DNA from: Vitrella brassicaformis CCMP3155
Lineage: Eukaryota > Protista > Chromerida
Length of the DNA: 64,000 bases
Direction of reading: 5' to 3'
NCBI GenBank assembly: GCA_001179505.1
Contig: CDMY01001019.1
Span: 62,001 to 126,000, forward strand
Below are positions 19,190 through 28,128 of this stretch, piece by piece. Every line of letters starts with the position of its first letter. The first letter of the stretch is position 1. The translations under genes were made by a program, and so were the position numbers. The notes beneath the pieces were generated by a model. That model ran no database searches. It was not told where the DNA came from and was given only the letters and a program-made list of their open reading frames with translations.

Positions 19190-23482
<4,293 letters not shown>

Positions 23483-23810
23483 GTCAACATCATGTCAGAG
23501 AGGTGGCAAGCGTGGCATGCAATGCAGTCCTTTTGTGTTTTGGTGTGTCGTGGTCCGTGTGGCTTTGACCTCAAGTACTTTTGCGATGGTAGGATGCGAT
23601 GACGCTGTGCTTGGAGGCTAACGGAACCAAAAGAACAGATCTCGGCTTCTTCGAATTGCGATCGCTGCGAGCTCACGCTTCATCCGCTCTGACATGCTGC
23701 TAATATCACCCATTCTGAACCGGCTTGCTGCGACTCAGCCAGCAACGTCGTTGATCTACGAGTGTGCATCTGTCACTGATCTACTGGTGATGATCTGAGG
23801 TGATCTGAGG

Positions 23811-26800
23811 ATGACTCCTGCACACTCCGGACACCGATGCAAGACCGCCCTCCGTCGGGTCGCCCCTGCATCCGTATCCGTCCCGCTGGCCGCCCTGGTG
23901 CCACTGATCTGCCTCCAATCAGCCCTCTCATTCATCCCCCACCCACACCCCCTTCATGCACAGCTTTCCCACAGGCCACCAGCGCGGCTCAGACGGCCTA
24001 GGCCATCTTCCACCCTGCAGATGTTCCTCTTTGGCGGCGGTGAGGCCATTGACCGAGGTGGCCCGAACAGGCACCAGCAGTCTGCCTTCTTCGGCTCGTT
24101 CGACGCCCTGGAGAGCGAGGTGCAGCACTACCTGGGCGACAGGGAGCGGCAGATAATCACCGGCGCACCAGCAGCAGAGGGAGACCATGGCAATGGCGGT
24201 TTGCAGGCCTTCATTAGGTGGCCGTTCGGGCGGAGCGAGAGGCATCGTCAGGGTGACAGTGACGGCCAGCAGTCCCCCTTGTCAGCTCAGGATGTTCGTG
24301 AGAGGCTTGCACGTGCTCCACTAGAGTATGGGGAGTTGAGCCGGTATGGGTATGGGTATCTGGTGGACCCTATCATGCGCTACCACGGCGGATACATCCG
24401 CGTGTCGCAGCGGCTGAACCTGCCTTACATGTCGGCACAGAGGTGGCATCCGGAGGTCCTCGTTGACCAGCTCAATACAAGACTGCAGAAACAAACCGCC
24501 AAGTGGGCCTAAGAGTCAGGGAGTGATGGGCAGAATGAATGGATGGTTGGTGTTGGTTCGCTTGTTTCCCTGTTGCCTTTCAGTGAGGGTGGCGAGTCGA
24601 GTGTGTCGGAGCTGCCATTCCTCGGTGAGCGAGCGGGACGCTCCCCCACATACCCATCCATCCATCCATCCATCCATCCACTATGCGTCGCCGTTTGTCT
24701 GCCTCCCTGCCGGCTATGCAGCTGGTGCCCATCAGTGGGTCAACAGGAGTGCGGACGCCCCTACCCGCGACAATGGCCAGGTTTCCGACGGTCTGGGTGT
24801 GGTGCTGTACCCCAATGTCGGCGACGTGGTGCTCTGCCCAATGGCTGACGGATACTCACTCGCACAGGCACGTTTGCACTTCTATTGCTTGGCAGCCACC
24901 AGCTAGCTATGCAATGCTGCGTATGTGGGGTGGATGGATGGATGGATGTGGATCGTTTCATTCAGGTGCAGAGGTTGCGGGAGATGGAGGGCGGGGTGTT
25001 TGTGGCGACGGTGCAGCGGCTGGTGAGAGACAAACAGTCGGGCCTGTACAAGCCTGACAGGATGGACAAACCCGCCACTAGGGTACGAGCAAACAAACAC
25101 ACAGATTCACACGGAGAGAGGGAGGGGCAAGCCACAGACAGTGATGTATGTACATGTAAGATGACGGACGGGCTGTCTGTGTGTGTGTGTGTTCAGAATG
25201 TGGAGGAGCTGTGTCCGGTGCGTGCCTACTACATCATGGGCAAGCAGGCCTTCCAGGCACAAAACGCACCAAACACACACAGTGCACACACACACGGGCA
25301 TCAATATTTATTGGCACATCCATCCGTCTGTCTGTCTGTCTGTCTGTCGTCTGTCGTGTCTCACTCAGGTTGAGTTTGACAGCGACACAGAGGAGCGGCC
25401 AGCACTGGTGGCCGGCAGATACACGTGAGTAAATCACTGACTCACCCAATTGCTCATCAGAAAGAAAGAAAGAAATCCACACCATTATCCATCCACTCTT
25501 CCTTCCCCGCCCTCGCTCTCCCTGTCTCTCCCTTGCTCTCTCAGGATCGATGCAGATCTGGTCAAGGCCTCTGGTGTCGGCCGTGAGGTGCTCAACCAGC
25601 GGGCCTACGACGAGTACCTCAACGACTACCGAGTGCTCAAGGAGGACCTCATCGTCAAGGCCGTCTATTCGGGCATCGCGGGGTTCGTCCTGACCGACCT
25701 CACCTTCGACCTCCAAACGGCTCTCATATTCCTCATCGGCAACCTCTTTGGGACCGGTCAGCGAACGGCCGACCGAAAAAGCCAACCAACAAACACATAG
25801 ATACATCTATCTGCCGTCATGTGTTTGTTGCATTCCGTTCCTTGTGTGGTTATCCCTCCATCCATCCCTCCGTCCGCCACCCACTCAGCGTACCTTGGTC
25901 TCCTCGAGGCCGGGACGGACACCTTCGGGACGCCCGAAGCACAGGGACCTCTTGGAAGGCTGTCCAACATCAGGTCAGTCGGTCCCGTCAGTGGACGAGG
26001 GGGTGAGTGAATGTGTGAACGAGTGGTGGGGAGGGGGGCCGTCCGCTCACTCCTTCCTGCGTTGTTTGCTGCTTGTGTGGCAGGTTGGCGCTTCCCGTGC
26101 TGCTGATGGTGACTCTGACGCTCTACCGCTCGGCCACGGAGGGCGGCTCCTTCATCCAGGACAACTACCTCACGTGGCTCACCAGGGAACAGTTCTTCGC
26201 GGGCATCATCGGATTCCTCTCATACAGGTGTGCTATAGGCCCAAAACATACGGCACTCAAACACAACGTACATGGACAAAAGAGCGAGCCGAGCCGGGCG
26301 TCCACCATTCCCTCTCCTTGGTCTGCCATGTGCCACGCAGGGTGCCGTTCATTCTGATGGCTTTGCAGAGTCTGTTTGGCGGGCCCGACGGGCAGAAGAA
26401 CATCCCTGGGTCGATCGGAGGTCTCGCCAGGATCAACGACGTGAGCGACAGACGCACACACGCACTCGCACATTCACCTGAGTCATACGCCACACACCTG
26501 CCCCTCTTCCCGTCCCCTGCTTTTTTGGTCTGCAATCAATGCATGCAGTATCTGTCAGAGAAGCGTCGTGGGCGGGAGCAGCCCAACGCCGCGCAAATGG
26601 AGCTGGATGCGCGCGACAACAAAAGGCAGCCGCCGCCCTCCTCTGCGTCCTCTGTGCCCTTCTTCGTTCCCGTGGCGGTGCTATCGGGCCCCATCTGTCT
26701 GGGTCGCACAGACGTCTTATCGGATCTGATGGCTCTTGACGACCGGTTCGCCATGCCGACATGGGTGACGCCCGACATAGACCACTCGCCTTTGACAAGG

Positions 26801-28128
26801 AGTACATCCGGGAGGTCCCGGGAGCTGGAGGGCATGCAGGCGCCCCCAATGCCGCAGGAGGTGCTGAGTATGATGCAGGCTGGCGCGGCTGGTGGTGGTG
26901 GGGTGGAGAAGGTGGGAGTTGGCGAGTTCTGTGAGGGCATGGATCTGATGACGGCTGATGGGAAAGATAGTACTGGTGACCTGCATACTGCTAGGGGTGG
27001 TGCTGGTGATGGCGATCGGCAGCTGGTGCTGGTGCGGAGGGGGCCAGACGGGCGGCTTTATGGACTGAGGCGCAAAGAGATCATCGACACCGCAAGACGG
27101 TGAGTAAGACGGTCGTCGGTCGGCCAACACATGACACCACAACAGGCAACCAGCACGTGTGTGTGCGCATGTTGTTTGTGTGTGTGTGTTCCACATACAC
27201 AGGGGCCGTATTCCTTTGATAGAATGCGATCCGTCCTCTCTCTTCAAGCTCAAGGGTCTGGGTGACGACATCCGCCTGGTGACCATTTGGGTGACCCTGC
27301 CCTCACAGAAAGACATGGAGGCACGACTCAGGCAACAGGTGGGTATTCAGTCATAGACGTAGAAAGAAAGAAAGAAAGAAAGAAAGACAGGCAGACAGAC
27401 GGACAGACAGGTCGACGAGCACTCCCCTCCCCTTGTGCATCCGCCCACGTCGATCATTGCATCTTCTGTTTGTCAACGCCTGACTGCGTGACTGGCAGGT
27501 GTTCGGCCAGGTCCCAATACAACACGAGACCTTTCCTCCTCCCCACAGTAATCGCACAGACACCGCCAGTAGCAGCAGCCACACAAGAGGCGCAATCGGT
27601 GAGGGCAATGACAACAGTACATCATTAGCATCATTGCGTGGGGTGGGTCAAGAGTTCGAGAGGCGTCGGGAAGAGATGCTGCATGAGGTCCAGGTGGGGC
27701 TGTTGAGCGGGCTGGTCGACTACTACGTGTACAATTCACAGGACAGCTCGACCAATGCGGCAAGGCAGGCAAGAGACTGTGTCGACAACGCACTCACAAA
27801 CACATAGATACTTACGTGGATAGATAGCCCAACGAACCAACCGACAAACAGCCTAATGACGGAGGGAGGGAGGGAGGGATTATGTGTAGGCAGGCAGGAG
27901 GGCAGGCAGCTGTGATGCGACAGACAGAGAGATGTGCTGTGAGTGAGGTGCGATCGGTGCCAACTGAGGTGGAGAGTTTGTGCGCATGTGTGCACACGTG
28001 ATGGGACTTCCGATGTCGAAAGCGCCGGTGCGGGCAATCCACCGTCTTGCATCGATCATGCGCCACGTTCGTTTGGTTGGCACCCCATGTCAGACAGGAA
28101 TCAACATACAGCTGCACCACGGCTTGTA
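23811..28128 (+). CDS. Plastid-type presequence + CGL160/AtpI(UncI)-like membrane domain + degenerate guanylate-kinase-like domain
   Basis: Signal-like LAALVPLICLQSALS-FIP is followed by an R/S/P-rich transit region. DYRVLKEDLIVKAVYSGIAGFVL...ALIFLIGNLFGTAYLGLLEAGTD, RLALPVLL and FFAGIIGFLSYR follow the CGL160 pattern. VAVLSGPICLGRT, LYGLRRKEII..ARRGRIPLIECD, IWVTLPSQKDMEARLRQ and DYYVYN follow the guanylate kinase pattern. The 3' end is approximate. Confidence 0.7.

Follow-up and report, generated by a model that had tools for sequence, protein, structure and literature searches.

What does a gene do that appears to join a membrane domain of the CGL160/Atp1 type, a type associated with the assembly of the plastid ATP synthase, to a domain resembling guanylate kinase (GK)? 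This question is raised by positions 23811-28128 of the 64,000-nucleotide window of Vitrella brassicaformis CCMP3155 DNA analysed here (all coordinates are those of the whole window, and features lie on the + strand unless stated otherwise). The surrounding DNA is eukaryotic and intron-bearing, with a GC content of about 58%. In the initial annotation, made from the letters of the DNA, one exon chain was proposed to link a bipartite presequence, soluble N-terminal domains, a four-transmembrane CGL160-like domain, and a GK-fold domain with an altered P-loop. From the evidence described below, it is held with moderate confidence that the Vitrella protein belongs to a nucleus-encoded, plastid-targeted family of thylakoid proteins in algae, probably those with red-derived complex plastids. 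In this family, an Atp1/CGL160-type four-helix domain would stand between a beta-rich N-terminal domain and a GK-like P-loop domain, and the whole protein would serve the assembly of ATP synthase.

By direct reading, the gene consists of 13 exons between 23811 and 27807, which sum to 2649 nucleotides in a single frame of 882 codons and end in the stop codon TAG at 27805-27807. Ten of the 12 introns are of the GT-AG type, and the other two are GC-AG introns with GC donors at 24868 and 25257. Transcript evidence consists of assembled contigs, not reads, from 4 of the 8 public runs that contain the stretch (X1, X2, X7, and X8, from three studies); these were chosen by a word share of 0.26-0.52, which is suggestive of intron-less copies. 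The whole frame is covered in two studies, by one contig of 2754 nucleotides in X7 (23752-27853) and by one of 2695 nucleotides in X8 (23788-27830). The joints and record arithmetic of these two contigs are consistent with the removal of all 12 introns, and ten GT..AG joints fall exactly at the predicted sites. Between 24864 and 25545, the contig records hold 236 letters, that is, 3+117+60+56; taken with the database model of the protein, this count indicates that both GC-AG introns were also removed as predicted. The joint 26440>26549, by which the membrane domain is connected to the kinase-like domain, is present in all four runs. The single exon chain is therefore borne out, as spliced contigs cross this joint and a relative carries the same fusion as an intronless genomic open reading frame (ORF). 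Transcripts ending between about 26430 and about 26550, which would have spoken for two genes, were not seen, the contigs of the four runs continuing past this region. Only the far end of the interval proved too generous: contigs stop at 27830-27868, and the last 260 nucleotides or so before 28128 are without mRNA support.

The fusion is not unique to Vitrella. The same arrangement was found in three other eukaryotic sequences, namely a marine eukaryote contig (ENA/TARA assemblies), an MMETSP transcript, and a JGI contig. The relatives compared below are P0002 (632 amino acids, aa) and P0003 (605 aa; MMETSP), which were obtained by word search, and L005, an ORF of 595 aa. In the marine eukaryote, the fusion is encoded by one intronless ORF of 1899 nucleotides, and the flanking genes are eukaryotic (a proteasome subunit, a DEAD-box helicase, and PIP5K).

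The Vitrella protein is already present in databases as CEM38990.1 (UniRef A0A0G4H5C6, Vitrella brassicaformis CCMP3155, 812 aa; P0001 below), under the UniProt name 'Guanylate kinase-like domain-containing protein'. This independent model has exactly the exons described above, and its sequence is identical from Met71 onward. Its frame opens at 24021-24023, 70 codons after the first in-frame ATG (23811), which is covered by transcript contigs that start 5' of it. The signal peptide is therefore missing from the database protein, and targeting predictions made on it would miss the plastid signal; in practice, the shortened public gene model hides the targeting of this protein. In the longer frame, the presequence (23811-23930) can be read by eye as a basic N-terminus, a hydrophobic core (VAPASVSVPLAALVPLICL, Kyte-Doolittle hydropathy (KD) 2.09), and a predicted cut at ..SALS|F (..QSALS|F) with Phe at +1. 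The same pattern was seen by eye in P0002 (..NVA|F), P0003 (..SAP|F), and L005 (..AHA|F), and thus in all four proteins. This combination of signal peptide and Phe typically marks proteins bound for red-derived complex plastids. The bipartite presequence proposed at the outset is thus recognisable, and the Vitrella protein is probably plastid-targeted.

The middle part of the protein is occupied by the four-helix membrane domain at 25621-26380 (P0001 327-460; the span includes introns 7-9). Four hydrophobic segments were located by hydropathy within about 130 residues, at P0001 335-351, 361-377, 396-417, and 440-456. Residues 327-449 match the Pfam family CGL160_C (PF24763; gathering score 34.2 bits) with 21.9 bits when the whole protein is used and 24.7 bits when a fragment is used (E 2.5e-4 to 3.2e-5), and the match extends over profile positions 10-125 of 133. 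The cut-off is exceeded over nearly the full length by P0002 (42 bits) and P0003 (43 bits), and L005, like P0001, lies below it, with 23 bits. P0001 can be aligned to P0002 (BLAST E 2e-20) and to L005 (7e-25), in each case as one unbroken stretch that runs through the N-terminal domain, the four helices, the linker, and the P-loop. Along the membrane domain, the motifs AY-x-x-L, R-x-x-x-P, and QF..(I/V)GFL.YR.P are conserved. The matching region of L005 (residues 131-272) is helical in its AlphaFold 2 (AF2) model, with a predicted local distance difference test (pLDDT) score of about 65-74 over most of its length. Because the profile match is near full-length, orthologues score above the cut-off, the alignments are continuous, and the motifs are shared, the middle part is accepted as homologous to CGL160_C on sequence grounds, in agreement with the four-transmembrane CGL160-like domain that had been proposed.

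The C-terminal third contains the GK-like P-loop domain at 26663-27783 (P0001 about 520-805; the span includes introns 11-12), within which two long inserts are specific to Vitrella. The evidence from the Vitrella protein alone is modest but consistent. Among PDB sequences, P0001 matched FAP42 with E 0.007, the alignment covering the P-loop strand and the core ..YG..IPLIECD..LVTIWVTLPS..EARLR. A feature search of the ESM Atlas with P0001 placed guanylate-kinase clusters on top (0.92, 172 shared features), and the Atlas model of the Vitrella protein resembles guanylate kinases over 184 residues, with a template-modelling score (TM-score) of 0.51 by query and 0.70 by hit. Exon-by-exon scans of Pfam and NCBIfam gave nothing useful, because the exons are short and the domains are divided among too many of them. 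A word search with a 451-residue stop-free stretch that includes exon 11 also gave nothing, the true protein (812/882 aa) being outside the length window that was searched.

Comparisons at the level of the family are much clearer. A profile of three family sequences found FAP42 at 1.5e-6 together with seven guanylate kinases, with both the N- and C-terminal motifs. L005 is the best-scoring member: it matches Pfam Guanylate_kin (PF00625; gathering score 25.2 bits) with 24.3 bits over profile positions 6-179 of 182, and mammalian guanylate kinases in the PDB over their full length at E 1e-4. The gathering score was reached by neither P0001 nor L005. A profile of four sequences was aligned to E. 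coli Gmk by hhalign with 88% probability (E 3e-6, 173 aligned columns). The AF2 model of L005 has a mean pLDDT of 54, with 66-79 in the GK core, and the best 50 Foldseek matches to it are all guanylate kinases (best E 7e-8, TM-score by target 0.47-0.62). In a leave-one-out comparison, a hidden Markov model (HMM) built from the three relatives gave the Vitrella tail 22.5 bits, compared to a maximum of 6.7 in 2000 shuffles. These results indicate that the assignment of a GK fold to the C-terminal third is solid at the family level, and the fold named in the initial annotation is upheld by the family profile against Gmk, the L005 and Atlas models, and the leave-one-out HMM.

As had been noted, the P-loop of this domain at 26687-26710 reads GPICLGRT. 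Compared to the canonical Walker A motif GxxGxGK[ST], Gly4 is replaced by Cys and Lys by Arg. The corresponding sequences of the relatives are GPLGAGRT in P0002, GPAGSGIF in P0003, and the canonical GPEGTGKT in L005. Replacement of the Walker A Lys by Arg normally abolishes catalysis. The segment that binds GMP in guanylate kinases, with its set of Ser, Arg, Arg, Tyr, and Glu, could be aligned at low confidence and is broken up in Vitrella by long low-complexity inserts; the GK core motifs YG and D are kept. Judging from these residues, the Vitrella protein may fairly be called a 'pseudo-kinase'. The description as a pseudo-GK stands for Vitrella and two relatives, and fails for L005. The family looks like a series from possibly ligand-competent to fully degenerate P-loops, and the presence of GxxGxGKT in one member suggests that the ancestral domain may bind nucleotide.

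Ahead of the membrane domain, a soluble N-domain conserved throughout the family is located by family alignments at 24796-25422 (P0001 about 200-300) and carries the motif P-x-x-GDVV. Beta strands are predicted for this domain in the AF2 model of L005 (pLDDT 60-73), and the N-domain is possibly a beta-rich, small barrel of the SH3/Tudor-like kind. No Pfam family was found for it in the Vitrella protein or its relatives, and an Atlas search with the N-terminal 300 residues of P0001 gave no usable feature match, only weak Tudor-like shape rows (TM-score about 0.25). A match to the green-lineage CGL160N domain was likewise not obtained from these residues in Pfam or the Atlas, by which the protein is set apart from CGL160 without a direct comparison to plant sequences. 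The Vitrella protein is therefore best filed as a CGL160_C-domain protein rather than as CGL160. Upstream of the N-domain, an extension at 24021-24795 (P0001 residues 1 to about 199) is present in none of the three relatives; a Tyr/Gly-rich motif (..YGYGYLVDPIMRYHGGYIRV..) lies within it, and no match was obtained in Pfam or the Atlas.

The search for the same fusion elsewhere, suggested by the initial annotation for a number of algal groups, had two outcomes. Beyond the three eukaryotic sequences described above, two mostly diatom clusters of the Atlas represent the nearest shapes to both structural models; one has 58 members (automatically named GK-like, with CGL160_C in 17%) and the other has 70. 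They were matched by predicted shape alone, with a TM-score below 0.5 in most rows. The same fusion is thus probably present in diatoms, as judged from modelled shape. In the initial annotation, no earlier description of the architecture was known. Among 37 papers in which CGL160 is mentioned, no title or abstract concerned a GK fusion or red-plastid algae, and searches with combined terms were likewise empty. No paper describing the fusion was found, which agrees with this claim; on the other side, the protein is already annotated automatically in UniProt and Pfam. As far as shown, the architecture is visible in automatic annotation and otherwise undescribed in the literature found.

Several observations weigh against the reading of this protein as an ATP-synthase assembly factor with a non-catalytic GK-like domain. 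The runs X7 and X8 are not recorded as RNA, yet complementary DNA is the simplest explanation for contigs without any of the twelve introns. The CGL160_C scores of the Vitrella protein (21.9-24.7 bits) are under the cut-off of 34.2 bits. The transmembrane profile of four sequences showed no similarity to E. coli AtpI in hhalign (probability 0.2%), and when bacterial and archaeal genomes were scanned for this domain, none of the 78 pattern matches was confirmed. The connection with bacterial Atp1/UncI is therefore drawn from Pfam and the literature. In the C-terminal part, neither P0001 nor its tail matched Pfam Guanylate_kin even at E 10, and when exon 11 was searched exhaustively by phmmer against 1.84 billion representatives, the sole match was P0001 itself (812 aa, 100% identical). 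This lack of single-sequence relatives arises because the GK-like half of the Vitrella protein is too diverged and too laden with inserts. The AF2 model of the Vitrella tail, made from an alignment of three sequences, reached a pLDDT of 37.8 and was discarded. Also, as L005 retains a canonical Walker A motif, the term 'non-catalytic' cannot be extended to the whole family.

Three other explanations were considered. It is extremely improbable that two adjacent genes, or an assembly chimera, were wrongly merged into one model. Contigs alone cannot prove a single molecule; however, the joining intron is spliced in frame in the four runs from three studies, neither a stop codon nor an alternative start lies between the domains, and in the relatives the fusion is found both in a genomic ORF without interruption and in a complete transcript. 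The two-gene reading was rejected, as spliced contigs bridge 26440>26549. Another explanation is that the four-helix domain merely resembles CGL160_C and that the protein is a membrane-anchored GK-like scaffold with a different role in the plastid, for example in nucleotide metabolism or protein sorting. The sub-threshold CGL160_C scores of Vitrella and L005, the failure of the transmembrane profile to match E. coli AtpI, and the lack of a match for the green-type CGL160N in Pfam scans are all in its favour. This explanation is nevertheless considered quite improbable, since two orthologues lie over the curated Pfam cut-off nearly along their full length and motifs are conserved through all four helices. 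Moreover, the conservation of Atp1 in diatoms was noted by Fristedt et al. (PMC4383579), and the plant membrane domain can be replaced by Synechocystis Atp1 despite low identity (PMC9806626).

The third explanation concerns the GK-like domain, which may be a working module for nucleotide binding or phosphotransfer, either a kinase or a sensor of GMP, GDP, or (p)ppGpp, with the Arg of Vitrella replacing Lys well enough for a ligand. ATP-synthase biogenesis or activity would then be tied to guanine-nucleotide status. L005 gives this explanation its main strength, as it combines the intact GPEGTGKT with a TR..R stretch at the GMP-phosphate site of guanylate kinases and nearly reaches the Guanylate_kin cut-off. 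The loop seems to be under constraint, as Vitrella and P0002 have GRT(D) in common, and the core motifs (YG.., ..D, RLR) are retained. It also fits that plastid and bacterial guanylate kinases are targets of (p)ppGpp. Diatoms possess RSH enzymes (PMC6881373). Against this explanation, and apart from the loss of the catalytic Lys discussed above, Vitrella also lacks the second glycine of the loop, and the GPAGSGIF of P0003 has neither the Lys nor the Ser/Thr. In addition, the GMP-binding region was not confidently aligned, and low-complexity inserts take its place in Vitrella. A working module is regarded as unlikely, although as a serious contender, and the reading as an assembly factor whose GK-like domain is no longer a kinase in Vitrella is preferred.

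The protein can also be compared with known systems. CGL160 is the sole accessory factor for CFo assembly identified so far, and its N-domain, which recruits CF1 via the DELSEED region of subunit beta, is specific to the green lineage; in Arabidopsis, the N-terminus is on the stromal side (PMC9806626). The membrane domain of CGL160 promotes assembly of the c-ring (CFo), as does cyanobacterial Atp1, which is able to replace it even though the plant domain is only 'distantly related' to Atp1/UncI (PMC9806626). Like Arabidopsis CGL160 (At2g31040), the Vitrella protein is nucleus-encoded and probably plastid-directed, has a four-helix domain of about 130 residues that matches the same Pfam model, and bears a soluble N-terminal extension; a role in assembly of the CFo c-ring may be expected. 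In contrast to CGL160, it has a different, beta-rich N-domain in place of the CGL160N that binds CF1-beta, a GK-like domain of about 300 residues after the last helix, and a bipartite presequence (signal peptide and Phe) instead of a simple transit peptide. Cyanobacterial Atp1 (Sll1321) and bacterial UncI (AtpI) are likewise small four-helix c-ring chaperones and are considered in the literature to be the ancestor of the CGL160 membrane domain. Unlike the Vitrella protein, they stand alone, are about 120 residues long, and have their genes in the atp operon; E. coli AtpI showed no detectable similarity, and no bacterial relative was retrieved.

The GK-like domain can be compared in the same way. 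Its fold and order of elements are those of guanylate kinase (Gmk/GUK1): beta1, the P-loop, a helix, the beta-alpha-beta core, the lid helices, and a C-terminal strand of the type ..D(F/Y)x(I/V)xN(D/E)D.. In contrast to the enzyme, the Vitrella Walker A motif is without Lys and one Gly, the GMP segment is not recognisable, two long low-complexity inserts are present, and the domain is joined to a membrane protein. Among solved structures, the best sequence match is FAP42 (PDB 7n6g/7sqc), from the central apparatus of the Chlamydomonas cilium. Its GK-like domains occur as repeats, one of which has GPSAAGRS in the alignment, where Arg stands for Lys, as in Vitrella. FAP42 itself is a structural protein of the axoneme, soluble and 2540 residues long; it lacks a membrane domain and has no connection with ATP synthase, and the likeness is one of degenerate GK modules. 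The GK-like domains of MAGUK proteins have also kept the GK fold, lost catalysis, and become protein-binding modules. The Vitrella protein has neither PDZ nor SH3 in Pfam, and there was no MAGUK chain among the PDB matches listed; membership in the MAGUK family was rejected on these grounds, and MAGUK was kept as a functional analogy alone. By this analogy, a MAGUK-style role in phosphopeptide binding and sensing might be imagined for the GK-like domain.

Under the preferred reading as an assembly factor, the membrane domain would act as a c-ring chaperone in the manner of CGL160/Atp1. If the N-terminus is stromal, as in CGL160, the four helices would bring both soluble domains to the stromal side, so that the GK-like domain would be on the CF1 side of the membrane. 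In Vitrella, this domain would not be a kinase and would more likely serve as a docking or ligand-sensing module. Such a module might couple CF1, or the nucleotide status of the stroma, to CFo assembly. The two soluble domains of the red lineage would then supply docking and regulation in a way that is analogous to, not homologous with, CGL160N. Sensing of nucleotides or (p)ppGpp is conceivable, chiefly for members whose P-loop is intact, and is offered as speculation. A broader scenario, which is doubtful as a whole, is that red-plastid algae independently gave the ancestral Atp1 chaperone stromal modules of their own, a small beta-barrel and a GK-derived domain, that recruit CF1. The GK-derived domain would be a guanine-nucleotide or (p)ppGpp sensor by which ATP-synthase assembly or coupling is gated according to the energy or stringent-response status of the stroma, and Vitrella would represent a later, ligand-blind scaffold state. 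A conserved protein with the same membrane domain and other soluble domains is a concrete candidate for the coupling of CFo and CF1 assembly in diatoms, chromerids, and their relatives. The protein would add a further example from nature of a GK fold recruited as a non-catalytic module, with P-loops that range from canonical to fully degenerate across the family.

The distribution of these parts over the exons is as follows. Exon 1 (23811-24502) begins with the first ATG of the long frame and encodes the signal-peptide-like leader, a transit-like stretch, and the Vitrella-specific N-terminal extension; its joint 24502>24584 is present in X7 and X8. Exon 2 (24584-24624) is based on direct reading and contig joints. 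Exon 3 (24722-24867), which is followed by a GC donor, is supported by the arithmetic of the contig records and is also found in P0001. Direct reading, contigs, and P0001 agree on exon 4 (24966-25082), exon 5 (25197-25256, again followed by a GC donor), and exon 6 (25369-25424). For the next three exons, reading and contigs agree: exon 7 (25545-25756) encodes an amphipathic pre-helix, the first transmembrane helix, and the first half of the second; exon 8 (25889-25973) completes the second helix and adds a loop; and exon 9 (26084-26227) encodes the third helix, a loop, and the start of the fourth. The remainder of the fourth helix is encoded by exon 10 (26341-26440), and the conserved motif GFLSYR-x-P straddles exons 9 and 10. 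Exon 11 (26549-27099) carries the linker, the P-loop, and the first half of the GK-like domain with its low-complexity insert. Exon 12 (27203-27338) contains the beta-alpha-beta GK core (..IPLIECD.. / ..LVTIWVTLPS.. / EARLR), which was aligned to the GK repeats of FAP42. Exon 13 (27499-27807) contains a low-complexity insert, then the C-terminal helix-strand-helix of the GK domain (..LVDYYVYNSQD..), aligned to the GK C-terminus, and the TAG stop.

Intron 10 (26441-26548), between the membrane part and the kinase-like part, is 108 nucleotides long, stop-free, and in frame, and an ORF at 25748-27103 reads through it. If retained, it would lengthen the stretch from the last membrane helix to the kinase-like domain by 36 residues and leave the protein unbroken; no such form was seen in the contigs, the intron being spliced out in those of all four runs. 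The 3' untranslated region (UTR) extends over 27808-27868, to the farthest of the contig ends (27830-27868). The 5' UTR can be followed over 23752-23810, up to the farthest contig start (23752 in X7, 23774 in X2, and 23788 in X8). Within it, an upstream ORF of 2 codons (ATG ATC TGA) occupies 23790-23798, and the main start codon follows 12 nucleotides downstream. Tetranucleotide microsatellites, (CCAT)n, (GGAT)n, (GTCT)n, and (GAAA)n, are found in introns 2, 3, 5, and 12 at 24643-24686, 24920-24957, 25313-25357, and about 27352-27387.

Divergent neighbours were observed at two of the loci. At the marine-eukaryote locus (L001, 3218-5647), the divergent neighbour is itself a fusion of 809 residues, in which UPF0176/rhodanese domains are joined to an O-methyltransferase, and the neighbourhood is the same in three independent assemblies. 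In Vitrella, the divergent upstream neighbour is a kinesin gene on the - strand (22661-23482). Its ORF at 22664-23110 scores 29.5 bits against the Kinesin motor domain of Pfam, and its next exon upstream has a sequence typical of the start of a kinesin motor.

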